A stretch of 64,000 nt of DNA, from the NCBI GenBank assembly GCA_950097015.1, contig CATNEN010000026.1:930001-994000 (forward strand), read 5' to 3'. Source of the stretch: Macrostomum hystrix (Eukaryota; Animalia; Platyhelminthes). Shown in pieces: positions 2,503 through 64,000 of the stretch. The first letter of the stretch is position 1, and every line of letters begins with the position of its first letter. The notes beneath the pieces were generated by a model that was given only the letters and a program-made list of their open reading frames with translations, ran no database searches and was not told the DNA's origin. A program made the translations under genes and the position numbers.

Positions 2503-3471
2503 AACTCCCTTACCTCGGAAATTTGATGCGTCGTATATAGGATGCACACTACTGCAAGTAAGAAGTTTCGCAAAAGTGGTACAAATTTTTGTGTGCTCTT
2601 GCCAAATTATGAGCGTATGCTACACATTTTAGTTAATTTAACAGTCTAATTGCTATGGCTAGTAAAGTCGTTATATGTGCTCGTTTCTATTCGTAATAAA
2701 AAGAAGTACGATCTCGTACTGTTAAGCCTACATTAGGCTAACCCATTTGGTTCACATGTACACCAGCTATTGCCTGGCGCTTCCAAACGCTGAGTACAGT
2801 CCATGGACTGGGAGGGGGCCACCACAAGGGGGGCTTCCCTTATCGAGGAATATGTGAAGGCCATGTTTTCAGTTTCGCTAATAGTTTAATGGCTGTTAAA
2901 TGGTTGCTCTGTGTAGCTTCTGCGTGAGTGCGTGTGTGCTTGGCTTGTGTTTCAAAGAATGCCGCCACTAAGCCCTACGCTGTCATGTGAGCTCAGGGTC
3001 CCACCCACCCGGGTCTATCAATCACTCGAAATTATTGGACTCAACTGCGGAGACTTCTTTGACTGGTCATTGAGTTCCGACGCCATACAAAACTAGGACG
3101 GGCAATGAGTGAGCACAGTGGCGTGAGTTTCGAAGCCAATTTCCAGGGTTGGCTGGTCTGATGGCGGCTTCCACAATTTGACATCTGTCACTGCTAGAGA
3201 GAGGGGGCCCTCTCTCCCATTTGATTGATAGGTTGCTTGCTGATTTGAGCGGAGCAGTGGCTGGCAATCGTTTGTGTGAGCTGAGTAAGTCCTGACAGGC
3301 CGCAAATGAAAACTATTCTTCGCTGCTTTTTTATTGCCCGTTTTTATCGAGTGGTCGACCAACATAAGTACATTGCTGAGCAATGAGCTTAAATGAACTT
3401 GCTTAAGTAGTAACAGCAGTAGTAGTAATACTAATAATATAATAATAATACCACATTATTTTGTGACACTA

Positions 3472-3714
3472 TAGACCCGCAGCCAGCGAGGAGGCAATTC
3501 TGCCCATTTCGCTGACTCCTAAGCACACACGCGTGCAGATCCTGTACGCAGGTATACGCTCAAACAGGTGTGTACATCTGCTTTGACTTCCTCATCGTCA
3601 GGCAGTGTACACTCTCACTGTGCCTTGGAGGTTGGCCCTCACGGCTCCGCCGCGGAATCGAACTCAGGGACCTTGGGGCGAGAGGCAAACGCGTTAACCG
3701 CTCTGCCACTCACC
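3472..3714 (-). mobile_element. SINE family A copy (tRNA-like head)
   Basis: Reverse complement starts GTGGCAGAGCGGTTAACGCG (A-box-like) and contains GAGTTCGATTCC (B-box); body ccaacctccaaggcacagtgagagtgtacactgcctgacga and tail gcagaattgcctcctcgctggctgcgggtc shared with other copies. Confidence 0.8.
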
Positions 3715-4189
3715 TAACAGCAGTAGCAGTAGCAGTAGTAATGGTCTTTGTAGCCTTTGAGTCTAATTTATTTACAAATTTACCGTGCCGAATAGTTTAT
3801 CTGCGTGTTCATTTATTTTGAATGGTCTACAAAAAAGTCGGTTCAAAGTTCGTTTCGTCGCTTTTCGTACAAAATATTTTATCGCAAGTGGCAAATAATC
3901 GACTCAGAAAGTCATAAATCATTGACAATGAGCAGAGGTCCGAGGGGGGGCTCAGTTGATAAGTGAGCCAGCGATTAGGAAACCAATTTTACGAGGGTTG
4001 CTTTGGGACGGCTTGGGGCAGCCAGATGGGATGCCTAATAAAAAACACTTGACTCACTGATGGAGTTTCGATACAACCTAGGCCATCTAAAGTAAAGTCA
4101 TCCATGCTTTCCCCAACTGTGAAAATAACAGAAAAAGAAGACTGGACAGAAAAATATATCTAGACGGAGAGGTAGACAGAAGAGAGTGT

Positions 4190-41880: not shown

Positions 41881-44800
41881 CTACTCAACGATCTCAACTG
41901 ATCTGCCTGTGGTCTGGCCGCCGCCAGCATCGCCGCGGGCCCCGCTGGCACCTCCGGGATGGTTTGCCATCCAAGTTGACAGCCGCTCCTTGACGTTCAT
42001 GTGGCCGCCGAGGATGTCAGGCGGAGTCGACTGCAGCTTGACGGAGGTGTTGCAGAACACCTGCAATTAGAGGTGGGTTTCCAGGAAATTGGCGAATAAA
42101 ATTGTATCGGGTCAGCCGAGTGCAGCTGCACGAACTCTCACCGTAGCTTGCAGATTGACGAGCTCGGTGCTGTGGAAGGCGGCGCCGTCCTGCTGTAGCG
42201 GCACGATGCGGGAAGCATCAATCGACGCCATCTGTCGTGCCTTCGCCTGGCGCAGCTTTGAATAGTCCGATGTTCGCGCCACAAAGTCGCGGAAGTCGTT
42301 GATCGCCTTCTCCTTCTGGCGGTGGTCCTCGCGAAGCTCGGCGTAGAGTGCCTGCTCCTCTGAGACCTCCTGCTCACGCTTGGCCTCCATGAGCTCCGTT
42401 TGAGTCCGAGCTACCAGCATCGTCTCCTGCTCCGTGCACTTGTTGACCCAGTCCAGGGCCTCTCTATCAGGCGTCACCGGCCGCACCTGCTCGAGCTCCA
42501 GCTCCCGTTGTACCTCGTCCCACACCTCGCCGAGCTTGTAGTCCAGGTAGCGCTCGATCAGAGTTAGAGTCACGTGATCCTCAGCGTTGATGCCTGGCAG
42601 ATCGACGAAACCAATCCGGTAGAACAGAGCGTAGATTTTGGCGCGCACGTTCTCGGAGACCTCCACGATGGCCCGGCTGGGTAGGCTGGCTGGCTGCGGA
42701 GTCACGGGCTGCTTCCGCTGAGCGTCGCCCATCAGTGGCGATAGCAGGTCCCCGATAGACCCGTCAGGCCTGCGCGGGCAGCCGATGGTGGCCTCGGTGT
42801 CGCGCCACAGAGCGCAGAACAGATGGGGCGCTGTGACCTCGCGACCGCCCTTCCAGGTCTTCAAATGCGGCAGGGTCTTCTCGTTCTCGCTGAGGTCGAG
42901 GAGCACGCCCAGTATTAGGCTGTGCAGATCTGACGGGCAGCGCTCGAGAAGGTCGAGCAGGAGGTACACACCCTCGCGCTCCAGGAAGGAGTCCTCGGTT
43001 GTGTAGGAGCCGACCACGCAGCACCAGACAGCATCGATGGCGGCGATCACCAGCTGGTAGTGACCCAATCCTGAGCTCAGGAGGCCGGGGTCCGTGCGTA
43101 GAAACTGCACAAGTGTGGCCACTCCGGAAGGTCCGAACAAATCCTTGTTGTGCAGACTATTCTCGCACAGGCCGCTCAGGATGCTCAGCATTTCGCGCTT
43201 CATCTCGAGGTCGATTGTATCGTCGTTAGTAGCCGTCGCAGCGACAGCCGGACCGGATCGGCTGCCGGTGACGGCCGCCACCGAAGAGGCCAGGATCTCG
43301 CTGAGCGCACCGATCGCGTCCTGGTCGACAAAGTCAGCCAGAATGTCGGGATTGTTCGTTGCCACCATGGCTGAGATGGCTCTCAAGGTGCGCCGCATCT
43401 GTGCTCGCTTGCTGCCGCGGCCGCCGGAGCCGTGGAAAGCGTTGCCATAGCCGAGGAAGTCGCCGCTGGCCTCGGTACACCAGAACAGAAGCTCCAGAAG
43501 ACGGTTGCAGCCGTTGCAGCTGATGAAATCCGCCTGCATCTTTGGCCCGACTGTGGCCAGTGCGGAGAGTGCCAGCAGCTGCAGCTCTTCAACATAGGCC
43601 GGGGGCAGCTCTCTCGGCTTGCTAGTCGGTTCGTTCGGCTTCACGTAGGACAACAGCGCCAGCATGAAGTGGCCCTCTGACAGGACAGGCAGGGCGCAGG
43701 GATCGCCCGACAGGCTGACGAGGGTGCTGATAAGCAGCTTCTTCAGCTCGAAATCCTCGTGATTTTTTGACAGCTTCAGATTCCTAACTAACGGACTGTG
43801 GCTCTTGACCTCCTCGAAAGTGGCAAACAGTGTTAGCTGCTTGAGGAAGCCGACCTCGATAAACGGCGCCCGACAGTCGGTGGCGGCGAGCAGCTGCACC
43901 AGCACCAGGACGTCGTTGCGCAACTGCCTATCGAACACGGAGAAGGTGCGCGGCAGCAGGTAGACGAAGGCCTCGCGCAGCTGGGCGACGCATTCCTGGC
44001 AGGCCAGCTGCCTGGCCACCTGCTCGGCGTCTCCGCGCTCCATCAGGTTCCAGAGGATCTCAACGGAGCGGAACAGCAGCTCGCCTGACGGATCCGGGTC
44101 AGTCATTCGGCTGCACAGTGTGTAGGCGGCGTTGACGCCCAGCATCTGGATGCAGCAGCGGGACGAATTGGCGGACAGCTTCTGCAGCAGGCTGATCACA
44201 GCCAGACGCACCGTCAAGTCTTTGTCCAGCAGTTTAAGAGTGCGAACCAGCGTCTCCGAGATGTCGCTTTCCTCGCAGATGGCTTGATTGTATCTGAGAG
44301 GAGGCGCAAAAGCAAATGCCATCAGAAAACACGGATCCGTGAGATTTGCCGCAATTCATGCTGCCCCACACAACGCTTGGCCACGTAATATAAGATTTTC
44401 ACATTGTAACGAACTAGTATGTTAGATTTTTTTTTATATTTTTATCATTTCATGGGTTTGTGTGGACCATACTGCCATGATATGATTATCCAATGAAAAT
44501 TTAAACACCCTGGAAGAATTGTTGATTGTGGTCAGTGGCAGAGCGGTCCAATGCGTTTGCCTCTCGCACCAAAGGTACCTGAGCTCGATTCGGCGGCGAG
44601 GCCACATTCACTTAGGGCACAGCCCCAGAGAGAATGCTTGGGGCCTTGTTGTGCAATTTACGCCCTTTGATGGCCAACCTCCAAGGCACAGTGAGAGTGT
44701 ACACTGCCTGACGGCGAGAAAGTCAGGGCAGATGTACACATTCGTGTGTGTGCCTGCGTACAGTATTTTTGTTGACTGTGTGATTAGGCGTCAGCGAAAT

Positions 44801-45468
44801 GGGTAGAATTGCCTCCTTTTTGCTAACCTTGTTTCGCCTAAGCATTGCTTGGTTGGTCCCGGAAATGAAACTCACTTCGCGCTGGCCGGTTTGTGGTCCC
44901 GTACGTCCTGGGGCGGCGGCTCGCCGTCGTAGATTTGCGCCAGAGTGCGGCAGATCTGCAGCCGGACTCGGCTGACGTCCACCCGCATGAGGAAGGCCAG
45001 CTGGGAGGCTGTCTCGACGCTGATCTGGAGGTAGGCCAGCTCGTCTGACGCCTTCTCCATCAGGAACGGCAGAGCGCATACGCAGAGGCAGTCTACAAGC
45101 GGCTCAACGTAGCAGACAAGGCCCTCCTCGATGCGGTCGGCGCAGATGTTGAGAATGCGGCGCACCTGCACGAGGTCCTTCATGAGGAAGCCCTGGCGGT
45201 AGTGCCGCAGGAGGCGTTCGATTGCCATGACGTGGCGATCGTACAGGCCTGCGTAGTGTGGGTCAGTGAGCACCTTGAGCACTCGGGCCAGGTCAACTGG
45301 TTGCAGCTTTTCGCCGGCAACATTGCCAATGTCTTCGTCTGTGATTATGTGAGCCACAATTGGGATCTGTTGGGTCTCCAGCTTCTGGGAGATTGCTGTC
45401 AGCGCGAGGCCGCCGGGCGGCAACGCTGACGACCCGCCGCCCGCGAAGGCTTGGGTCTTTGTTGCCAT
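41881..45468 (-). CDS. CFAP69: Cilia- and flagella-associated protein 69, 974 aa, 3 exons
   Basis: Exons 45468-44876, 44293-42142, 42060-41881, phases consistent; DPDPSGELLFRSVEILWNL, DRQLRNDVLV, EDFELKKLL, GNAFHGSGGRGSKRAQMR, VSENVRAKIYA match remembered CFAP69 sequence. Confidence 0.93.
44533..44820 (+). mobile_element. SINE family A copy in CFAP69 intron 1
   Basis: gtggcagagcgg head, gagctcgattc B-box-like, shared body. Confidence 0.82.
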
Positions 45469-46651: not shown

Positions 46652-49509
46652 TCCTTACCTAAAGCAGTAATATAAAACATCCGAAATTCGTAAGTTGAAT
46701 ATACGTTTAGCGACAAGAATTAGTAGTTGATTGTAACTTTTTATAGCTTTAATGGAAATGAAACAAAAACAATTTATTATAACTATAATTAAAATATATA
46801 AAATAAAAAAAATTATTTTAAAAAATCTGCATTCACGCTTGTAACTTTGTTTTAACCACCTAAAGTAATAACGATTTTTTTCTTTATTATTAAAACAACA
46901 AGACTTTAGGAAATCCGTATTTAGGAAATACTAAATTAGCTAAGCTAAGATCATCGCTAAATCCATAATCAAATAAACAACTATGCGGTTTGTTGCGTCA
47001 GCCTTGCAACCTAAAGTTAATATTACCAGCAGATTATAGTTGTCATTGTGTTAGAATTAATTAAAAGTCCATGCGGACCTGCGGACCGAACCCTTAGCTA
47101 TGTATAAGCGTCGCAAGTGTACGCTTGGCGCTCCTCTGTGTGCGTCTGTGGAGCGGGAGTGCTGTGCATGGGGTTGGTGTTTCGTCAGAGAAGAGAGAGA
47201 GATTACTTTCAATAACGAGTATAAGCAAATCATGTAGCTTCAAAAGGCTCTCTAAATAATTTTTTCGATCAATGTATAGTTCCGCCTTTAATAACCCTCA
47301 GTGTTCAGTTATTATTCATTTACACCCATCACACAAAACTGAATCGTCACAGTATTAATAGTCTGTATACTAAATAATGTGGTAATGTCCAAGATTGTTT
47401 TTCATTGTTTCTAACTTAAGCAAGTCATGATTCCTAGATTGATTGCTCTATAACCTCTTAACAATAAGTACTGCTATCTAAATTTAAACCGCTTTTTCAA
47501 TATTTTTTCAATACCATATATACTATATACCATATTTTTGACAAGCAAAACTTTCGTAACGCTTCTCTCGATGCAAATCCTCATTTGTTTATTATTCGCC
47601 GCTAATTGTAGCATGTCTTCATAAAAACATTTTTTTCATTTTTCTAAATTTATTTCACCTATTAAACCTAATATATAATTAGGATATATAAAATTCTAAA
47701 ATAAAGCCATGCATTTGTAATGCATATTTTCCGGAATAAAATCCGGGAATAATTTCAAGCATTTAAAACTGTTTTATTTACGTAAGTTTTTTAATGAATA
47801 AATATCTTATCGGAAACAGAAATATTGCTCTTTTGGATAAAAACTTGAGGAATCGCCTATTGGTTCTTTGTCTTTCTTGCAGCCTGCAGCAGACGCGCAG
47901 AAAAATGTATTCCATATTTGGTCATAATCAACAAAATTATCGAAAGATCAAAGCACTTCCACATCCTGCAATATGGCATTCAGAGTATTCACTAAAGGGC
48001 CATGCCCACGATTTGGCTTCATCAGGCGGGTTATGAAAGCGCGATCGACAAAACAGTAATTTAGCAGGTGCAATCAGCTAGTGAAAAATCGCTGTTCTAC
48101 ACCTTCCCTTTGAATTATTTTCCGAAATCGATTGCCGTGTTTACGAAAACGAAATCGCGTCGTTATATAGTCTCCGTCTCTCACGCACTCCCCCCGTTTC
48201 TTCCGACCCGCTATTATAAAAGGCTAAGTTGCTAAAAATTGCCGGAATATCTTTAGTCCGCGAGTAATTTCTCCATGTTCCTAAGCAAATGAGCTCGCAG
48301 CTTTCCCTCGTCCAAATTTATCTTCTAAATTAGTCACTGCCCTACTTTCGGTATAGGAAAAATACGAGTAAGTGCTAGTCAAATTGCTAAAAAGGAAAAC
48401 AGAAGCTCTAACAAGATTGACGACAGGCTCAGAAACTGGATGAATATGTATCAAACCAAAAAACGTACCAACATCCGTAATTTCTCTTCTAACGCATGGC
48501 TCCTTTTTATGTGATAGAGATGTTCTGTTTGCAAAATTGTCCAATAGCATTTGGGGGGTATTCTTGGGTCTACAAATGAAGGTAGACTGTAATACAGTAG
48601 ATAAATCGTGCATAAAACGAGAAATGTGTGCATTAAATGCTTTCGGCCAATGAGCAGCCACGAAGCATTTGATTCTCGCTTTTAATATATAATAAATGTC
48701 TAAATAGTCTATGGACGAGACCATCTGCGAGAGATATCGTGATTACAATATTTTGTACTTCTTGCCACTTGGCCATCTATGGCACTTAAAACCTTGTATT
48801 GATCCTTTATTGCTTAACGCATTGAATGTCTATGGCCACGGATAGCGAATATCTGTCTTCCTAAACTGGCTCAAGACTTTGGCCATAGACATTTGGAGCT
48901 TGCAACTATGGAAAGAGGACGCAATGACCTAGGCATGAGAGCGCGAAGCTTTTTGTGTTTCCGCATGATCTAATAGCGACCCCACTCGTACCTTTGCCCA
49001 TCCAAGCTAAAATTTCATATCCTAAGCTGTTGTTTTAGTGTCCCACTGAAAGTTCTCATGCTCTTCAATGTCACGGACAAAACAATATGATTAGGGCACC
49101 AAATGTTTTTCTGCTTTTAAAATAGTCGCTGCGAATTCCCTTAAAAATGTGGTGCCCTCAGTTTGAAAATTGAAAATATGGAAAATCTAATCATTTTTGC
49201 CCCCCAGCATTGCCAATTGATTCTGCACAAACCATCCATTCCCGATTTCTTAGCAACTAGGCATTGAAGCACACCTGAATCTGGAATCGCTGCAACGATA
49301 GCTTGCGACAATTGCTCGTAGGCGATTGCAGTCTGAGCAGTTTTCGGAGCGGTAATTTACGTGATTAAGCTTCAATAAAGGCTCCGAGCTTGCTAGATTA
49401 GAGCCACGCAGCTAAATTGACGCCTCCACTGTCGCCACAGAGCAGTCTTACATTTGACGAAGGGCGCGAAACACCTTCGCCAGATGCTCCCTGCAGTCCA
49501 GCAATCGCC

Positions 49510-49516
49510 TATAAAA
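49510..49516 (+). promoter_or_regulatory. TATA box of the prohormone gene
   Basis: TATAAAA 98 nt upstream of the ATG at 49608; AATAAA at 50045 downstream of the stop. Confidence 0.6.
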
Positions 49517-49607
49517 GCCGCCTTTGTTGGCCCGGACACATTTCGCGGACCAGAAGCGCACCAAGCGAGTTCTATACTAGACTTCTATCGAATTCCCTAA
49601 TAGGAAA

Positions 49608-49951
49608 ATGTCAGCCAAGTCAAGCCGGGTCAGTGCTCAGCTGTTCCTGTGTACCATTTTGATTGCCATCGCAGTTGCCAGCGTCCAGTCGGCTCCTTGC
49701 TACGAGGACGAGACACTGACGGACCAGCCGACCGCCTGGAACGGTAAGAAGGCCAGCTGTTTGTGATTCTCTCATCGACAACGACTCACAAACCTAACTC
49801 CACAACCCGCATTCCAGAGCCCGAAGCCAAGCAGATTGGCAAGCGGTCGTACATTCCACTATTCAACTATCTCAAGATTGCACTCAAGCACGAACGGAAT
49901 GGCCGGTCAGGCGATCTGGCAACTGGCCACTGGCGCTGGCACTGGGAGTGA
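49608..49951 (+). CDS. Secreted neuropeptide prohormone, 89 aa, 2 exons
   Basis: Exons 49608-49743 and 49818-49951 (phase 1, GTAAG...TTCCAG); hydrophobic signal peptide ending VQS/AP; GKR and GR amidation/cleavage sites. Confidence 0.8.
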
Positions 49952-50162
49952 CTGCTGAGCGAAACCCGATCAGCTCGAAATGACTGAAAAATTTGTGCAC
50001 TGATTTCATTTCTAACCTGAATGCCAAGAGGTGTCAATGCTAAAAATAAACACTAACCCAAGCACCTCAGTGCTTACCGCATGCCAAAAAATTAAAGAAA
50101 GTCTACAGAATATCTTTTTTATTCGAAATAAAATCATCTGGCAAAGCACGCAGAACAAGCTA

Positions 50163-50598
50163 TAGTGAATCTGGGATTCGGTGAATCTGGGATTCTGTAA
50201 ATCTGGGATTCTGTGAATCTGGGATTCTGTGAATCTGGGATTCTGTGAATCTGGGTTTCTGTGAATCTGGGATTCTGTGAATCTGGGATTCGGTGAATCT
50301 GGGATTCTGTGAATCTGGGATTCTGTGAATCTGGGATTCTGTGAATCTGGGATTCTGTGAATCTGGGATTCTGTAAATCTGGGATTCTGTGAATCTGGGA
50401 TTCTGTGAATCTGGGATTCTGTGAATCTGGGTTTCTGTGAATCTGGGATTCTGTGAATCTGGGATTCTGTGAATCTGGGATTCTGTGAATCTGGGATTCT
50501 GTGAATCTGGGATTCTGTGAATCTGGGATTCTGAGAATCTGGGATTCTGTGAATCTGGGATTCTGAGAATCTGGGATTCTGAGAATCTGGGATTCTGA
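50163..50598. repeat. 16-bp minisatellite (GTGAATCTGGGATTCT)n with GAATC/GATTC hairpin
   Basis: Direct reading. Confidence 0.96.
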
Positions 50599-50871
50599 GA
50601 AGAAATCCTACTGGGAGCGGCTGACTGTTCAAACTGAACGATTCGTGGTTCAAAGAGGCAGAATCTGCTTCTGTTGAAGGCATCCATCCGCTAGCATTTG
50701 TGAATCTAAGGCATTTTTCAATAAACAATTTCTGCTGTGAAGATAATTGCTCCGAGAATTGCTCGCTGGACCATGTCGTTATTGTCTGATTGCCTATCGC
50801 TTTCCAATTTATTCTGCACTTCAGCTCAAATCCAACCCAACTCAATCACCGCCTCCCTTTCAGGCATCCAT

Positions 50872-51430: not shown

Positions 51431-54400
51431 TCAGACAGGCTTGCCGAATCTCAGGTACTTCTTGGCGTCATCTGGCTCGCTAATCATCGCGCCGACAGCA
51501 CCAGTGTGGCCGGTGATCAGGTAATGCAGCTTCAGCGATTGCTGGGGGTGAAAGATTGGATGGGTACAATTTAGCAACAAAATCCTCACTGACAGCAGTG
51601 GCCTCATAACCCCCCTGAATGTACAGTCATCAATAACACCCACCACCCCAATTCTCACTATCAGCTGTGGCCTCACAAACCCCCTGAATGTACAGTCATC
51701 AATAACACCCACCACCCCAATTCTCACTATCAGCTGTGGCCTCACAAACCCCCTGAATGTACAGTCATCAATAACACCCACCACCCCAATTCTCACTATC
51801 ATCTGTGGCCCCACAAACCCCCTGAATGTACAGTCATCAATAACACCCACCACCCCAATTCTCACTATCAGCTGTGGCCTCACAAGCCCCCTGAATCAAT
51901 AAAAAACAAACCACCCCAATTCTCACTACCAGCTGTGGCCTCACAAACCCCCTGAATGTACAGTCATTAATGACACCCACCACCCAAATCCTCACTATCA
52001 GCTGTAGCCTGACAAACCCCGTGCAAGTAACACCACCAAAATATCATCTGCTGCTTTACGCACTCCCACGGCCTTTGACCCGCACTCTACTCCTCTCACC
52101 ATCTGGAAAAAGTGCTGCTGCCTGAGCATCTCCTGCCGCATGTACTGGTGCCGGAAAAAGTTACCGCCGAGGAAGATGGTGCAGTTGTTTGTCATCTTGG
52201 CGCTGGTGGCCAACACGTTGAAGAGGTTGGTGACAAAGGCGGCTACCAGGGAGGCGGCGAGATCCTCCTTGCTGCACTGGTCCCCTGTTTTTGGAAAGTC
52301 ATGGCGTTCAAATTTCCATTCCATTTCCAGGAAGCTATTTTCCTGAAACCATAATCCTGAAACTATAATCCTGAAACTATAATCCTGAAACTATAATCCT
52401 GAAGCTATAATCCTGAAACTATAATCCTGAAGCTATAATCCTGAAGCTATAATCCTGAAACTATAATCCTGAAGCTATAATCCTGAAGGATTAAACCTGA
52501 AACTATAATCCTGACACTACAATCCTGAAACTATAATCCTGAAGCTATATCCCTGAAACTATAATCCTAAAGGATTAAACCTGAAACTATAATCCTGAAG
52601 CTATAATCCTGAAACTGTAATCCTGAAACTATAATCCTGAAACTATAATCCTGAAGCTATAATCCTGAAACTATAATCCTGAAGTTATAATCCTGAAGCT
52701 ATAATCCTGAAGGATTAAACCTGAAACTATAATCCTGACACTACAATCCTGAAACTATAATCCTGAAGCTATATCCCTGAAACTATAATCCTAAAGGATT
52801 AAACCTGAAACTATAATCCTGAAACCATAATCCTGAAACTATAATCCTGAAACTATAATCCTGAAACTATAATCCTGAAGCTATAATCCTGAAACTATAA
52901 TCCTGAAGCTATAATCCTGAAGCTATAATCCTGAAGGATTAAACCTGAAACTATAATCCTGACACTACAATCCTGAAACTATAATCCTGAAGCTATATCC
53001 CTGAAACTATAATCCTAAAGGATTAAACCTGAAACTATAATCCTGAAACTATAATCCTGAAACTATAATCCTGAAGCTATAATCCTGAAACTATAATCCT
53101 GAAGGATTAAACCTGAAACTATAATCCTGAAACTATAATCCTGAAACTATAATCCTGAACTATACTCCTGAAACTATAAACCTGAAACTATAATCCTGAA
53201 CTATACTCCTGAAACTATAAACCTGAAACTATAATCCTGAAGCTATAATCCTGAAACTACTCTAATCTATAATACCCATACCGGAATCCTGAACAGTGAA
53301 CATAAAACTGAAATCCCAACCCAGGAATTCCAAAACTGGAATCCCGAAACTGAAATTAAAATCATGACTAAAAAACTAGAGTTTTCGTATAGAGCAGGGA
53401 TCTCACTCCGCAGGTTGAGATCCACTGCTTTGCCAAACGGGAAGATTGGCATGCTGGCCGGGATGCGGCCGTAGGGGCCGTCCACCCCGGTCTGCACGAG
53501 GTCCCGGCCCTCGTTGTCAATGTTGCCCCGCCTGCCGCGCGTGGCCAGGTCCAGGATCTCGTCGTAGTTGCTGGTGCCCAGAAGAATTTTGCCGAAGCCG
53601 AGAAACGATTTGCCAGCTAGCCAGAGCCCGGTGACCAGGTAGGATTCGCCATTCTCCTTCACCTGCAGTTCCGGTAAGGGTGCATGGCCGGCATTTTATA
53701 AGTCTAGAAGTTGGAATGTCCAAATATATCAAACTTCTCAAACCCGAACCTTCTCAAACCCGAGCCTTCTCAAACCCGAACCTTCTCAAACCCGAACCTT
53801 CTCAAACCCGAGCCTTCTCAAGCCCTAACCTTCTCAAACACGAACCTTCTCAAACCCGATCTTCTCAAACCCGAACCTTCTCAAACCCGAACCTTCTCAA
53901 ACCCGAACCTTCTCAAGCCCTAATCTTCTCAAACACGAACCTTCTCAAACCCGATCTTCTCAAACCCGAACCTTCTCAAACCCGAACCTTCTCAAACCCG
54001 AACCTTCTCAAACCCGAACGGGGATTTTCTCAATCCCCGAACCCGCCGCCCGTCGCTCACGTAGATGACTCCGCCGCCAGAGCCGATGAAGCAGAACAGG
54101 CAGGGCAATGGTCCACCGGCGACATCAGCCGAGCTCGAGCTCGGCTGAAACTGCTGAGTCATGTTTTCCTGCTCAGGGTTCTCAGCCTTGTCGGCGAAGA
54201 TGGCCAGGTCCGCCTCGACCTCAGGGTAGCAGAGCGCCTCGAGCGGCAGGTGCTGAATGAGCCAGTGGGCGCCCCGCGTCTGCGACAGGAACTCGTCGAT
54301 GAATTCCAGCCTGAAGGAAAAATATAGACTCAGCGTCAGCGTGCAGCATAGTCTACTATCAAGTAGTGCCAGCGGAAAGATAAGGTTGAATTTTATCCTG

Positions 54401-55278
54401 TCATTTCAATCGATTATGAATGCAGTTGGTTTGTGAGGCCACAGCTGACTGTAAGAATTGGGGTGGTGGGTGTCACTGATGACTGTACATTCAGGGGGGA
54501 TTTGTGAAGCCACAGCTGATAGTGAGAATTGGGGTGGTGGGTGTCATTGATGACTGTACATTCAGGGGGTTTGTGAGGCCACAGCTGATAGTGAGAATTG
54601 GGGTGGTGGGTGTCATTGATGACTGTACATTCAGGGGGTTTGTGAGGCCACAGCTGATAGTGAGAATTAGGGAGGTGGGTGTCATTGATGACTGTACATT
54701 CAGGGGGTTTGTGAGGCCACAGCTAACAGTGAGATGCCAGCGAGCTGCTCACTCGAGTCCCAGCTTCTCCTGAATGAGATCTCGGTATCTGTCGCAGCCA
54801 ACTCCAGTTACGCGCAGCTTGCCGCCCTCTCCTTGGCGCAGGATGGCCTTGCTGGCCAGGTAGTCGAGTCCTGCCTCGAAGTGCTTGTTGTTGAACAAGG
54901 CGAAGTACAGCCGGTAGGTTTCGTCCGTGTCGCCAGCTGTGACAAAGAGTACTTTGGTCAGGGAGCAGCCTGTAAATGTTAGAAAGATTTTTACTCCTCG
55001 AGTGACGATAGAATCACTCCCGAGTGACGAATGAATCACTCCCGAGTGACGATAGAATCACTCCCGAGTTACGATAGAAACTCCCGAGTGACTATTGAGG
55101 TATTCTAGGTGACAATCAAATCGTAAGAGTGAGCAATGCGCTCGTAGTAGATTGTACGCTTTTAAAGATATTTTTTAGTTGAATCACCTCTGTCGATTCC
55201 GGCCATGACGGTGATGTTTTCCAACGCAGATTTTCTCAGCGTCACCACTCTCTCATCGATGAGAAATTGTTGAGACAT
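51431..55278 (-). CDS. pank: Type II pantothenate kinase, divergent, 369 aa, 6 exons
   Basis: Exons 55278-55188, 54969-54753, 54310-54061, 53662-53407, 52284-52100, 51541-51431, phases consistent; GIDRGCSLTK, VTGVG, FIDEF, FIGSG, SKEDLAASL, IFLGGNF, HTGAVGA. Confidence 0.85.
51581..52020. repeat. 69-bp minisatellite, about 6 units, in PanK intron 5
   Basis: aaccccctgaatgtacagtcatcaataacacccaccaccccaattctcactatcagctgtggcctcaca. Confidence 0.93.
52345..53268. repeat. 14-bp minisatellite (AACTATAATCCTGA)n with a 224-bp higher-order repeat
   Basis: Rare variant gacactacaat recurs at 52513, 52737, 52961. Confidence 0.95.
53735..54018. repeat. 16-bp minisatellite (CCTTCTCAAACCCGAA)n
   Basis: Direct reading; PanK intron 3. 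Confidence 0.95.
54428..54734. repeat. 69-bp minisatellite, about 4.5 units, inverted relative to 51581-52020
   Basis: tgtgaggccacagctgatagtgagaattggggtggtgggtgtcattgatgactgtacattcagggggtt is the reverse complement of the other array's unit. Confidence 0.93.
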
Positions 55279-55945: not shown

Positions 55946-56365
55946 TTGTAGCTCAATGAGCTAGAGAAATAATTCTCGATGAGCAAGTCAAGTATAACCA
56001 GAAATTCGAGCGTAGGATGCAGTCACGGCGTTTTCTCTTTTTTATGTTTGATTTTCTCACGATAAAAAAAGCTCAGAAAGCCATAAAAAACTTTGTGAGG
56101 CCTATGTCTCGTAGGTCCGATGCGGCACATACTTTGCTAGCAATGCGTGACAAATAGACGCAAAATGATCTGACGACCAAACCGAATAGGTCAGTCTCCA
56201 CTCTGCTCCAATGCCATTGGATAGCTCAAAACTCGATAGCAGGCGGCTACAAAGGTGGCACTTAAAAACGGGCCGAGTTTCATCGGGAATTCGCCGAATT
56301 CCATTTTTAAGGCACTTCCTGACCCGACTCACAGTTTTGCTCAACGCTAGGAACAGTTGCCAACA

Positions 56366-59300
56366 ATGAACTTGTGGAAGCTGCTGGTCCTTCTGGCTGC
56401 CGCAGTGTTAGCAAGTTCAGCCAGAAATTCGACAATTTATTTCTTCTATGACAGCTCCGCACCGCCAGGCACCGAGTTTGTCTTTGCTCGCGTCGCCGAG
56501 CGCATCGCCGCCAGCTTCGGAGCCGTTGAAATTCTGCCACTCGAGCCGGATCAAAACCACAATGGCTACGCCCTGCTCATCGGCCTCTGCAAAGCCACCA
56601 GAGCCGGCGCCATAGCCGTGTTCGCCTCCGTGCGTCCCGAGGCCGACCGTCTCATTGCTAGCTGGGCGCAGTCGCACGACCTACTGTACATTGCCTGGGG
56701 CCAGACATTTCCAGACCTGCCTGGCGTTCGTCTCAGTCCGCTGCCGGATCTGGCGCCGGCATTCGAAAGCCTCCTGGCCTACCTCAACTGGACGGACTTT
56801 GCCTACCTCTATGCTGACGACGCCGGCTTCAGACGCGGAGTTCGCCTAGCTGAAGCCCTGCGACGTCGGCACCAGCGCGGCGACGATTCAGCTGAGAATT
56901 TCTCCGGCAGCGAGATAAGCAGAGCCGGCGACAGCATCGACTTCAGGCGGGTGTCGCCGGTCGCGGGGCCTTCGCAGCTGGAGAGAACTCGAGACGCGCT
57001 GCGCGTCCTTGACGCCAGACTCGGCCAGCATCGGCCGCGGCGTCGGCTGCTGGCCGTTGACGTCGGTGGCATGCACAGCGTACAGCAGCTGCTGAACGAG
57101 CTCGCACTGCTGGGCATGAACCGGCCGGAGTATCACTATGCCATTGCGGCGCTGGGAATGTCGGAACTGCAGCTGGGGAGCTTCATCTACAGCGGCTGCA
57201 ACATCACCGGCTTCGACTTGGCGGTTCGTACACGATTTACACTTTTCGTAATCAATTAATGCCGTTGTACAGCTACCTGTAGCTCGTATCGTCCATAAAC
57301 TTGGTAGGGGGCAGAAAACTAACGCAACTGACTCTTCTATTAAGATCCCTGAGCTCGAATCCTAGGCGAGGCCGCATTCTTTTTCAACGCAGCCACAGAG
57401 AGAAGGCTTGACGGCTTGTCCGGGAAATTTGCAATCAAAAGGGCCCAACGCATGAGGACACTGTGAGATCGTACACTGCCTGAATATGAGAAAGCCAGGA
57501 CAGATGTACACACTCCTGTATGTGTTTCTACGAAAAGGGGCAGAATTGCCTCCTCGCTGGGTCCACTGTCACCACATGATATGCCAGCGACCACAGCCCT
57601 CCTACAAGTACTATTGGGCTGGTTTGTCTGGGTGGCCTGGAAGTAGAGTGCTAGGTCAGCCAGAGAAAGGGGCTGGTTTGTCTGGGTGGCCTGGAAGTAG
57701 AGTGCTAGGTCAGCCAGAGCAAGGGGCTGGTTTGTCTGGGTGGCCTGGAAGTAGAGTGCTAGGTCAGCCAGAGCAAGGGGCTGGTTTGTCTGGGTGGCCT
57801 GGAAGTAGAGTGCTAGGTCAGCCAGAGCAAGGGGCTGGTTTGTCTGGGTGGCCTGGAAGTAGAGTGCTAGGTCAGCCAGAGCAAGGGGCTGGTTTGTCTG
57901 GGTGGCCTGGAAGTAGAGTGCTAGGTCAGCCAGAGCAAGGTTTTAAATTCAGGCAACCGATATTCTCGCCAGATTCCCAGAGGTTACGCAAGGCGCTTCG
58001 GGTCAGTTCCACCAGCTGCCTACGTTCAAGGCCACGGCCGGCCGGACCTCAATCCACCGTCGCACGACGTCCTGGCAATTCAGGCCGCCCTGACAGCACT
58101 GGCGGAGGCTGTCGAGGCCACCGGCTGGTCGACGTCAGACATTGATCTCGACAACGACAGGACCAGTGGCCCGGCGGTCCTGACTTGGACGGAACTGCCC
58201 TGCCCCAGCGGTGACATCAATGGCGAAAGAGGTCGACGCTGGAGCCTCACCGGTAGCAGCCGTCGTCACCGTCTGCGTCGTAGAGAGCTTCGGCGTCGCC
58301 TACTTCGGGCGGTCCGCAACCGGCTAGAAGTCGAAGGCAGCAGCGGAGGCGTTCGCGTGATGGACCTGCTGGATGCGACCCACCGATCTCAGCCGATCGG
58401 AGTCTGGACTCGCTCGGCCGGGTTGAACATCACAAGCGACCGGCATCGGAGGCAACTCCAGGCTGGCGGTAATAATGACACGGTCGACTCCGGTCTTCCA
58501 CTGGGCAACGGCACCGTCGTCCGGGTGGTGAGCATTCTCAACGATCCGTTTGTCATGCTGCGCGAGGGCAGCGAGAATGCCACCGACTTCCGGCAGCGTT
58601 ATCACGGCTTCTGCATCGACCTGGCCGAGATGGTCTTCGCCAAGCTGGGAGTTGGCTGGCAGCTGCACCTGGTTGGTGACGGCAAGTACGGCGCCCAGGA
58701 GCCCAGCTCAAACGGCAGCGGGGAGCTAGTGTGGAACGGCATGATGGGTAGGGGGCGCATCCGTCTCTGCTGAACCTTCGTTTGCTCTCTTTTACCCATG
58801 CCCATCGAGCACCGTCAGCGAGTCGATGAGAGATTGATAGAGTGAATGAGAGATTGATAGAGTCGATGAGAGATTCAAAGAGTATACGAGAGATTGATAG
58901 ATTCGATGAGAGATTGATAGAGTCAATGAGAGATTGATAGAGTCGATGAGAGGTTGATAGAGTGGATGAGAGATTGATAGATTCGATGAGAGATTGATAG
59001 AGTTGATGAGAGATTGATAGAGTCGATGAGAGATTGATAGAGTCAATGAGAGATTGATAGAGTCAATGAGAGGTTGATAGAGTGGATGAGAGATTGATAG
59101 ATTCGATGAGAGATTGATAGAGTTGATGAGAGATTGATAGAGTCGATGAGAGATTGATAGAGTCAATGAGATATTGATAGAGTCAATGAGAGATTGATAG
59201 ATTCGATGAGAGATTGATAGAGTCGATGAGAGATTGATAGAGTCGATGAGAGATTGATAAAGTCGATGAGATATTGATAGAGTCGATGAGATATTGATAG

Positions 59301-62300: not shown

Positions 62301-64000
62301 AAACGCTGGTAAGGAAGGAAGACAATGCTGCTAGCAGTCCTGATCCTGAACCTGGCAATGCAGCTCCCCTGCTGCAGCTGCCAGCAGGGCTCGAGCCCCG
62401 ACTCGTGCCGCAGTTCCGTCTGGTTCCTGAGCCGGGACAGCACGAAGGAGTACTCACTGCTTGTCTCGTTCCCGGCTACAGGCGAGGCTGCCTGCCTGTT
62501 CGCAGCCGCCGTTGGAGCCGCTGACGCCTCGCCATTAACGAGTCCCGACCAGTTTTTCTCAACGTACGACAATGACAATGACTTGCAAGACTATCCGATT
62601 AGCTGCGCTGCAAGACCCTTTTCAGGCTGGTGGTTCGGCAGCTGCTTCTTTTTCAACCCAAACGGACGCTACGTGGATACAGAAGCTACCAGTCCGGGAC
62701 AGACAGGCGGGCCCTGCCTAGTCTACACATGGCCCGGCTCCTCTTACCCGTTTGTTATGTGGTACTCGGTGCGAGAGTTCGAGTGCCTCGTCACCGAGTT
62801 TGTCTAGGCTTCAGTCTTTAGACAGTCGCAGTACGCATAACTTGAGATCAAAACAGCTGGCCCTTGATTACACTCCGTTAACTAGTTTCTTTCTCTAACA
62901 AATATATCTAACAGTTCGGCAGATTTTAGGCTACAAATGTGTAATTTAAGAAATCTCACAAAGATATCCACGACTTTGTGGCGTGTCGCGGAAGGCCTCT
63001 TGTTTTCACTAAGTCCGGTCTGGGGGCGTTTTACAAACCCGAAATTTCACAACGTCGAACAAGATCGGAATTTCACTACGCCGAATAGCATTGCTGAGAT
63101 GAGAGACTTCATGACGTCACAAAGTCTCCTATTTTTGCAGTGCAATTCGACGTTGTGAAGCCTTGTGCAATTCGACGTTGTGAAGCCTTGTGCAATTCGA
63201 CGTTGTCAAATTTAAACGTAATCAAATTTCGGGTTTGCGAAGGCGCCCCCGGTCTATGTATCGATTATTTTCCTGCCCCAGTGGGCCACCTCCAGTCTAG
63301 CCCACGCTCTTGTTTCTCTTACCCCTTTTGATTATATTCGGCCTGCCTTTTTAACTCAATGTACGCTGTAACCCTCTCCGTCTACCCCCTCTGAGCCTGC
63401 CTGCTTTGTTCACTCACCCTTCTGCCTTCATTGTTATCAGCTCAAAATAGATTTATGAGTTGGGGGCTCTGCTTTGATCGCGCCTTGGTTGTCTCTGCCG
63501 CCGCCTCTTACTAAAACTCATCCAATTCTTTGTTAATTTCGCATGCCGATTTAGTCGTAAACTTGATTGAGGCGAATGCTTTAATATCCCCGACTTATAA
63601 ACAAAGACTATTCAAAACTTCTCGGTTCAAAATTGAGTTCGTAGCCAAGCGAACAACCTGCAGCGTCACAATAAATTATTTCCCCGCATTCCAGGTTCAA
63701 CCAAGGAGTTCTTCCGCCGCTCGGAGGAGCCAACCTACAAGAAGATGTTCGAGCTGATGGAGCGAGACAAATCAGCGTATGCCAACTCGCTGAAGGAGGG
63801 CATCGACAGGGTGATCGAGTCGGACGGAAAGTACGCCTTCATTCTGGAGTCGAAGACCAACATCTACACCAATAACCGGAAGCCCTGCGTCACTATGATG
63901 GTCGGGCAGGAGTTCAGCCTGAAGGGCTACGGCATCGCCATCAGTCAGGAGAAGCACGAGCTGCGCGAGCGAATCAACGAGGCCGTCTTACAGCTGCGCG
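56366..64000 (+). CDS. Ionotropic glutamate receptor subunit (AMPA/kainate-like), 3' end truncated by the window
   Basis: Exons 56366-57223, 57973-58747, 60828-61137, 61518-61852, 63695->64000, phases consistent; signal peptide, [52 protein letters not shown]. Confidence 0.93.
57340..57605 (+). mobile_element. SINE family A, diverged copy in iGluR intron 1
   Basis: ctgagctcgaatcc head, gtacactgcctga body, gcagaattgcctcctcgctgg tail. Confidence 0.7.
57615..57940. repeat. 54-bp minisatellite, about 6 units
   Basis: ggggctggtttgtctgggtggcctggaagtagagtgctaggtcagccagagcaa. Confidence 0.95.
58812..59590. repeat. Adjacent 20-bp (GATAGAGTCGATGAGAGATT) and 22-bp (GAGAGTCTGCGACAGTTTGGTG) minisatellites
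   Basis: Direct reading; junction at about 59340. Confidence 0.95.
61240..61340 (+). mobile_element. SINE family A, tail fragment
   Basis: gtgtgtgctcaggagttagcagaattgcctcctcgctggctgcgggtc...acccacagccc. Confidence 0.75.
62325..62807 (+). CDS. Short secreted fibrinogen-related-domain (FReD) protein nested in an iGluR intron, 160 aa
   Basis: Hydrophobic N-terminus [12 protein letters not shown]; [34 protein letters not shown] match the fibrinogen C-terminal signature; lies in intron 61853-63694. Confidence 0.75.
   Translation: MLLAVLILNLAMQLPCCSCQQGSSPDSCRSSVWFLSRDSTKEYSLLVSFPATGEAACLFAAAVGAADASPLTSPDQFFSTYDNDNDLQDYPISCAARPFSGWWFGSCFFFNPNGRYVDTEATSPGQTGGPCLVYTWPGSSYPFVMWYSVREFECLVTEFV

Follow-up and report, generated by a model that had tools for sequence, protein, structure and literature searches.

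A candidate prohormone gene in the Macrostomum hystrix window

The locus studied here raises the question of whether a short stretch of the Macrostomum hystrix genome holds a genuine prohormone gene and, if so, which peptide this gene releases and whether that peptide belongs to the PDF/PDH/cerebrin family. The window (the whole stretch of DNA analyzed, 64,000 nucleotides long) had been described in a first-pass annotation, made from the letters alone, as carrying a compact gene with a TATA element, two exons and an AATAAA signal. Reading the sequence directly, we found all these elements at the positions given, and the exon translations and the joined model yield, from two exons, a product of 89 aa that is exactly the one written there. 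The remark that the list of open reading frames misses the gene as a unit was also correct: the mechanical list shows one ORF of 52 aa and another of 62 aa, which makes the peptide gene invisible as a unit.

All features of the gene lie on the plus strand. The core promoter block CTATAAAAGCCG (49509..49520), with TATAAAA at 49510-49516, is located about 97 nt 5' of the start codon (ATG at 49608), which has an A at -3 (Kozak) in both M. hystrix and M. lignano. Coding exon 1 (49608..49743, 136 nt) encodes the predicted signal peptide and the start of an acidic propeptide, and ends with AAC G, in codon phase 1. The predicted signal peptide (aa 1-28, 49608-49691) was judged by eye, with the cut between VQS and AP; in both species, again by eye, it shows a basic n-region, an uncharged core of 15-18 residues and small residues at -3 and -1, and in M. 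hystrix the n-region is made basic by K/R and the uncharged core comprises 15 residues. The intron (49744..49817, 74 nt) is of the GT-AG type, reads GTAAG..CCAG and has phase 1. Because the unspliced frame stops at 49764-49766, in M. hystrix only the 49743^49818 splice puts the signal peptide and the conserved peptide in one reading frame.

Coding exon 2 (49818..49951) restores the frame and encodes the end of the propeptide, the processing sites, an 18-mer and a tail, up to the stop codon (TGA, 49949-49951, read directly). More specifically, a Gly (49838-49840) precedes the dibasic cleavage site Lys-Arg (aa 54-55, 49841..49846), which is followed by the predicted mature 18-mer, SYIPLFNYLKIALKHERN (aa 56-73, 49847..49900), predicted to be C-terminally amidated. 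Next to it lie a Gly-Arg (49901..49906), the putative amidation donor and monobasic cleavage site, and a C-terminal tail rich in W and H and without amidation signal, SGDLATGHWRWHWE (aa 76-89, 49907..49948). The poly(A) signal AATAAA (50045..50050) is found 94 nt 3' of the stop codon. The separate exon translations were used as database queries, while the joined 89-aa model was used for translation and codon counts. A search of the genome (220,453,370 bases; 42 contigs, as in the published ~220 Mb assembly of M. hystrix, PMC10468722) detected no paralogue, and the gene is single copy in its own genome.

The gene is conserved head-to-head with CFAP69 in M. lignano

In the window, the peptide gene is divergent from CFAP69 (42112-45468, minus strand), which lies ~4 kb away and includes two or more long exons, two of them encoding 198 and 736 aa. 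For the 736-aa exon of CFAP69, identity is 93% with a M. lignano protein and does not exceed 54% with any other species. An orthologue of the peptide gene is present in M. lignano as three intact copies, head-to-head with CFAP69 on the three CFAP69-encoding contigs; the order of the two genes is kept, at a distance of ~7 kb. The comparison of orthologues covers two species and four loci. Located by blastn and translation, the M. lignano copies (L003 2452-2847; L004 about 2081-2778; L005 about 3423-4123; all on the minus strand) each encode an intact 100-aa product, and the only difference among these products is one signal-peptide residue. The three locus copies are 98-99.9% identical to each other, a three-copy state that is expected from the hidden polyploidy of this species.

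When 7 kb around the gene were compared by blastn with M. lignano, only the CFAP69 exon and 68 nt at 49841-49908 (84% identity) were aligned, and these 68 nt are the peptide-coding stretch. All three M. lignano copies carry the 12-nt block CTATAAAAGCCG unchanged, in the middle of non-coding DNA that is unalignable. The M. lignano intron, 93 nt long, matches that of M. hystrix in its position, in its phase 1 and in its donor (GTAAG after an exonic G), and the signal peptide has an equal layout, with ..AASA before the cut and HPC after it, and just 10 of its 28 residues identical to M. hystrix. The M. lignano AATAAA is found ~85 nt 3' of its stop, in a context, AAAAATAAAC, that is common to both species. 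As a side observation, the 93-nt intron is open in frame in M. lignano, giving a 131-aa ORF, so that the peptide would be encoded there whether or not the mRNA is spliced.

These data bear on the possibility that the locus holds no functional gene, but a chance pair of ORFs or a transcribed, untranslated remnant. Consistent with such a view, no transcript or protein record of the peptide gene was present in any collection searched, and the M. lignano loci carry no called gene in the records of the three contigs. However, two species whose synonymous divergence has reached saturation retain an intact ORF at all four loci, and the TATA block, the start context, the splice donor, the intron phase, the cleavage sites and the poly(A) signal are all kept. 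The dN/dS of the peptide, given below, also argues against a non-gene, and we consider this explanation very improbable. The spliced product of either species was absent from the protein collections searched; this missing transcript-derived protein means little, since Macrostomum CFAP69 is found there only in entries from NCBI and UniRef, and run assemblies contribute none.

Selection is concentrated on a single peptide and its flanking sites

We compared the M. hystrix and M. lignano precursors part by part by Nei-Gojobori counts of dN and dS. In the block formed by KR, the 18-mer and GR, 20 of 22 residues are identical (dN 0.063, dS 0.82), with 8 synonymous versus 3 non-synonymous differences and a dN/dS of about 0.08. 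The corresponding values are dN 0.74 and dS 1.10 for the signal peptide, whose identity is given above, dN 0.92 and dS 2.89 (near saturation) for the propeptide (8/25 residues identical), and dN 0.62 with saturated dS for the C-terminal tail (5/14). The signal peptide, the propeptide and the tail have diverged almost freely, and strong constraint is on one part only. The low dN of the block with respect to 0.62-0.92 elsewhere indicates that selection has preserved a single peptide together with the processing site on either side of it. Neuropeptide precursors usually show this pattern, a conserved peptide with its sites between freely varying flanks.

The consensus of the constrained block is KR-SYIPLFNYLK(I/F)ALKHER(N/S)-GR. 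The M. hystrix precursor ends with ..KQIG-KR-SYIPLFNYLKIALKHERN-GR-SGDLATGHWRWHWE and that of M. lignano, where the dibasic site is extended to K-KR, with ..ELVK-KR-SYIPLFNYLKFALKHERS-GR-SPDPPRRWHWLWQRR. Within the 18-mer, 16 of 18 residues are identical, and the substitutions from M. hystrix to M. lignano are I11F and N18S. Conservation of the cleavage sites in an orthologue had been proposed as a test of the gene by the first-pass annotation; KR and G-R are indeed retained in M. lignano and, together with the Arg at P4 of the second site (R-N-G-R in M. hystrix, R-S-G-R in M. lignano), are kept in all four loci of the two species.

The same annotation had taken each Gly followed by a basic residue as an amidation site and had anticipated up to three peptides, including a His/Trp-rich C-terminal one. 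The Gly-Arg after the 18-mer is conserved, but M. lignano has another residue in place of the Gly that precedes the first KR (..ELV-KKR), which leaves the N-terminal amidated peptide unsupported; as this peptide is not conserved and the propeptide and most of the tail are near neutral, the proposal of three peptides is not supported. Part of the tail persists: RWHW (49934-49945) and S-x-D alone are common to both species, and the 14-nt block GGCGCTGGCACTGG, encoding RWHW, is identical in M. hystrix and M. lignano, while the rest of this putative C-terminal peptide has diverged. With constraint confined to KR, the 18-mer and GR, the gene most likely gives one 18-residue amidated peptide, not three.

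Proposed processing and nature of the product

The architecture of the gene, its orthology and its pattern of constraint are observed in the two genomes. We estimate at roughly 60% the probability that the locus is truly a gene for a peptide-hormone or neuropeptide precursor, restricted to the Macrostomum lineage and releasing one 18-residue amidated peptide. In the processing that we propose, the 89-aa preproprotein would enter the secretory pathway via its predicted signal peptide, which would be cleaved, and a prohormone convertase would cut at two places, behind Lys54-Arg55 and behind Arg75, the latter in an R-x-G-R context that puts an Arg at P4. The basic residue would then be taken off by a carboxypeptidase, and Gly74 would be turned into a C-terminal amide by peptidylglycine alpha-amidating enzymes. 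The outcome would be a single 18-residue peptide, SYIPLFNYLKIALKHERN-NH2, with ..F......S-NH2 as its M. lignano counterpart. This 18-mer would be the selected product, presumably of neural or endocrine cells, and most likely an intercellular signal acting at a receptor, probably a GPCR; the acidic propeptide may serve as a spacer, and the W/H-rich tail may be a by-product that is weakly constrained at most.

Monobasic cleavage at G-R is less certain than cleavage at K-R. It is established for proprotein convertases that an Arg at P4 favours monobasic cleavage, and the Arg at P4 of the G-R site in both species fits this preference. The processing machinery is represented in the genome, where profile searches detected copper monooxygenase (PHM-type) and proprotein-convertase P-domain loci. 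The orphan 'spp' and 'npp' precursors of planarians and other flatworms are alike in the small size and two exons of the gene, in their signal peptide, acidic spacer and KR and G-R sites, and also in that a single amidated peptide is their only conserved part. Secretory gland products can bear equal processing signals, and for this reason the 'neuro' part of the label is something we infer.

Indeed, the same convertase and amidation signals could belong to a secreted non-neural peptide, either a host-defence (antimicrobial) or a gland/seminal-fluid product. The 18-mer is cationic (+2 plus one His), predicted to be amidated, half hydrophobic and placed behind an acidic propiece and KR, and an acidic propiece, KR and a cationic amidated peptide are the layout of many animal defence peptides; amphibian and arthropod cationic host-defence precursors, with their signal peptide, acidic propiece, KR and short cationic amidated peptide, are alike in this respect. 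They differ in that the Macrostomum gene is single copy, a point that we count against a defence role, and has no significant amphipathic moment: the helical hydrophobic moment is 0.28 for the window peptide and 0.26 for that of M. lignano, values that 34% and 38%, respectively, of same-residue shuffles reach. Moreover, purifying selection is found on the mature peptide, while signal and propiece are free. This is the opposite of typical defence-peptide and seminal-fluid genes, in which the prepro region is conserved and the mature part is variable. A defence or gland product is a possible explanation, if an unlikely one.

Searches for relatives outside Macrostomum

Compared with generic prohormones, the Macrostomum peptide matches no described family in Pfam, in collections of 5.8 and 1.8 billion proteins, in the PDB or in the open literature. 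More specifically, Pfam gave no family match for the two exon products and none for the M. lignano exon-2 product; an Anophelin match with an E-value of 0.15 was due to mere signal-peptide hydrophobicity and was rejected. With the 62-aa ORF that contains exon 2 as query, and thus with products of 89-100 aa in the length range, a word search of 5.8 billion proteins returned no candidate. A phmmer search of exon 2 against 1.84 billion representative proteins returned one match, P0001 (543 aa), which we discarded as a spurious relative, as it is a translated tandem DNA repeat matched in eight weak stretches; these eight repeats summed to an E-value of 3e-8, and repeats inflate the scores of short queries. 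The ESM Atlas contained no usable match to the gene product, the PDB gave chance Vps4 matches alone, Rfam gave nothing on the window, and strings of the peptide fragments gave no match in the open, searchable literature. The gene is uncatalogued and so far known from Macrostomum alone.

Relationship to PDF/PDH/cerebrin precursors

The first-pass annotation had left the choice between a PDF/cerebrin-like peptide and a new neuropeptide family; the new family is the better half of this proposal, and the PDF half fares less well. If the gene were a very divergent PDF/PDH/cerebrin precursor, the 18-mer would be either the PDF-type ligand or the associated-peptide helix, now released, and would act in both cases on a PDF-type class B receptor. 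The layout is PDF-like in the order of its parts (signal, acidic region, KR and an amidated peptide of about 18 residues) and in the size of the precursor, 89-100 aa in Macrostomum, and spiralian PDF/cerebrin precursors span 72-170 aa (Thiel et al., bioRxiv 10.1101/2021.03.03.433790). Both also have L-hydrophobic-N-x-L near the peptide N-terminus, and L-F-N-x-L is in register with nematode PDF-1, whose sequence SNAELINGL.. is published (PMC3414713). The pattern S-x3-L-[IF]-N-x-L had been linked to nematode PDF-1 in the first-pass annotation, and both the sequence given there and the register proved right (PMC3414713), but the ungapped BLOSUM62 score against PDF-1a, counted by hand, is about 11, which is the level of chance.

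A better likeness is to the associated peptide. LFNYLK[IF]ALKHER aligns without gaps with the associated-peptide motif of brachiopod and nemertean precursors, with 6/14 identities and a score of 36 by hand count (about 19 bits). These motifs read ..AFRIMRIALNHQRR.. and ..AFKILRLALKPQRD.. in brachiopods and ..AAKILRIALA.. in nemerteans, and the associated-peptide helix, ..A-x-[KR]-I-[LM]-R-[IL]-A-L.., sits upstream of the hormone (Thiel et al., bioRxiv 10.1101/2021.03.03.433790). In Macrostomum, the helix-like string F-N-Y-L-K-[IF]-A-L-K-H-E-R lies within the released peptide itself. As a null, the 18-mer was compared with 114,451 aa of CFAP69 proteins, where 7 diagonals score at least 36; ~0.07 chance matches with a score of at least 36 are thus expected in a set of the size of the PDF precursors (about 1.2 kaa). 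What makes the score-36 likeness suggestive is solely that the PDF family had been named in advance; with every peptide family taken as search space, it falls short of significance. In addition, the two PDF likenesses use overlapping residues and therefore cannot both be homology.

The descent from PDF/cerebrin precursors is also favored by the existence of a planarian receptor classed as PDF-type (PMC12638048), and by the fact that a canonical cerebrin gene was not found in this genome by a PF06324 scan and a degenerate DNA pattern. In these scans, the sole PF06324 match in the genome (E 3.7, on another contig) was a chance LLSLPK string, and the degenerate D-S-L-[WFY]-N-L-P DNA pattern gave 18 genome matches, fewer than the reversed-pattern control, none of them with a KR or G-[KR] context. 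The same profile, however, has no match to the peptide or the locus: hmmscan with PF06324 reported none for the exon-2 product at E up to 10 for the window and 0.01 for M. lignano, and a six-frame genome scan at E up to 10 did not report the peptide locus. The hallmark cores N-S-E-L-I-N-S-L-L / NSELINS.L or ..DSL[WFY]NLP..-amide are absent, and by eye only L-F-N-x-L is common.

Spiralian cerebrins share ..DSL[WFYI]NLP[DSN]..-G[KR] (Thiel et al., bioRxiv 10.1101/2021.03.03.433790), and the Macrostomum peptide differs from the PDF type in having neither an NSELINSLL nor a DSL[WFY]NLPD core. It ends in Asn/Ser-amide, whereas PDF-type peptides end in a small hydrophobic residue, and it is followed by a non-amidated tail of 14-15 aa, whereas G-[KR]n is the very end of the precursor in all 14 spiralian sequences of the published list (Thiel et al., bioRxiv 10.1101/2021.03.03.433790). 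This tail sits where cerebrin should be, and it is cerebrin-unlike and not amidated. Calcitonin-type peptides can serve PDF-type receptors (PMC12638048), which means that a PDF receptor does not require a PDF. With PF06324 silent, the cerebrin core missing and the L-F-N-x-L likeness at chance level, membership in the PDF family, as it had been suggested, is not borne out, and a very divergent PDF precursor appears unlikely.

We also consider, as a rather improbable scenario, that the gene is a flatworm descendant of a PDF/cerebrin precursor in which the hormone was lost or scrambled and the associated-peptide helix is now the released, amidated product under selection, possibly the ligand of the orphan flatworm PDF-type receptor. 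If this were true, a supposedly inert precursor region could take over as a hormone. Our search of the literature found no report of a PDF-type ligand for flatworms. On the receptor side, the best long-ORF 7tm_2 loci examined in the genome show either a GPS motif, which marks the adhesion type, or strong divergence, and the B1 receptor genes of this genome are likely split into short exons. A divergent orphan receptor was observed elsewhere in the genome (G000:C7:10617929-10620061; L011 301-2433, plus strand) as a single 711-aa ORF with a complete secretin-family 7TM (62 bits), in which no GPS or hormone-receptor domain was detected and whose class B structure matches are weak (PAC1 receptor, 26 bits).

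Significance and neighbourhood of the gene

With a lineage-restricted Macrostomum signalling peptide as the preferred reading, the locus adds a well-supported, uncatalogued signalling-peptide gene for two Macrostomum model species, M. hystrix and, with its three copies, M. lignano. The exact predicted product is at hand, making synthesis, receptor testing and a mass-spectrometry search possible. The gene also shows that synteny combined with local dN/dS is able to confirm very small genes overlooked by annotation and absent from protein databases. The likeness to the PDF/cerebrin associated peptide is a lead only; it is cheap to test and informative either way, since a planarian receptor is classed as PDF-type, yet our literature search found no flatworm ligand of this type.

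The window genes also include an ASC/DEG-ENaC channel and an ammonium transporter. Downstream of the peptide gene, on the plus strand, lie exons of an ionotropic glutamate receptor (ANF_receptor, Lig_chan-Glu_bd; 56357-58773) and an ORF with a fibrinogen C domain (62325-62807). A 16-bp minisatellite, GTGAATCTGGGATTCT (50165-50601; 27 copies, 96% matches), starts ~115 nt 3' of the poly(A) signal and gives rise to long spurious minus-strand ORFs at 50012-50845 and 50160-50687. Further downstream, two arrays of a 69-nt unit (51581-52020 and 54428-54734) are in opposite orientation, their consensus units being reverse complements, and flank ~2.4 kb of other minisatellites, namely 66 copies of a 14-mer (52341-53259) and a 16/95-mer repeat (53734-54019). 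These paired 69-nt arrays possibly form the two ends of a mobile element, as inverted terminal arrays.
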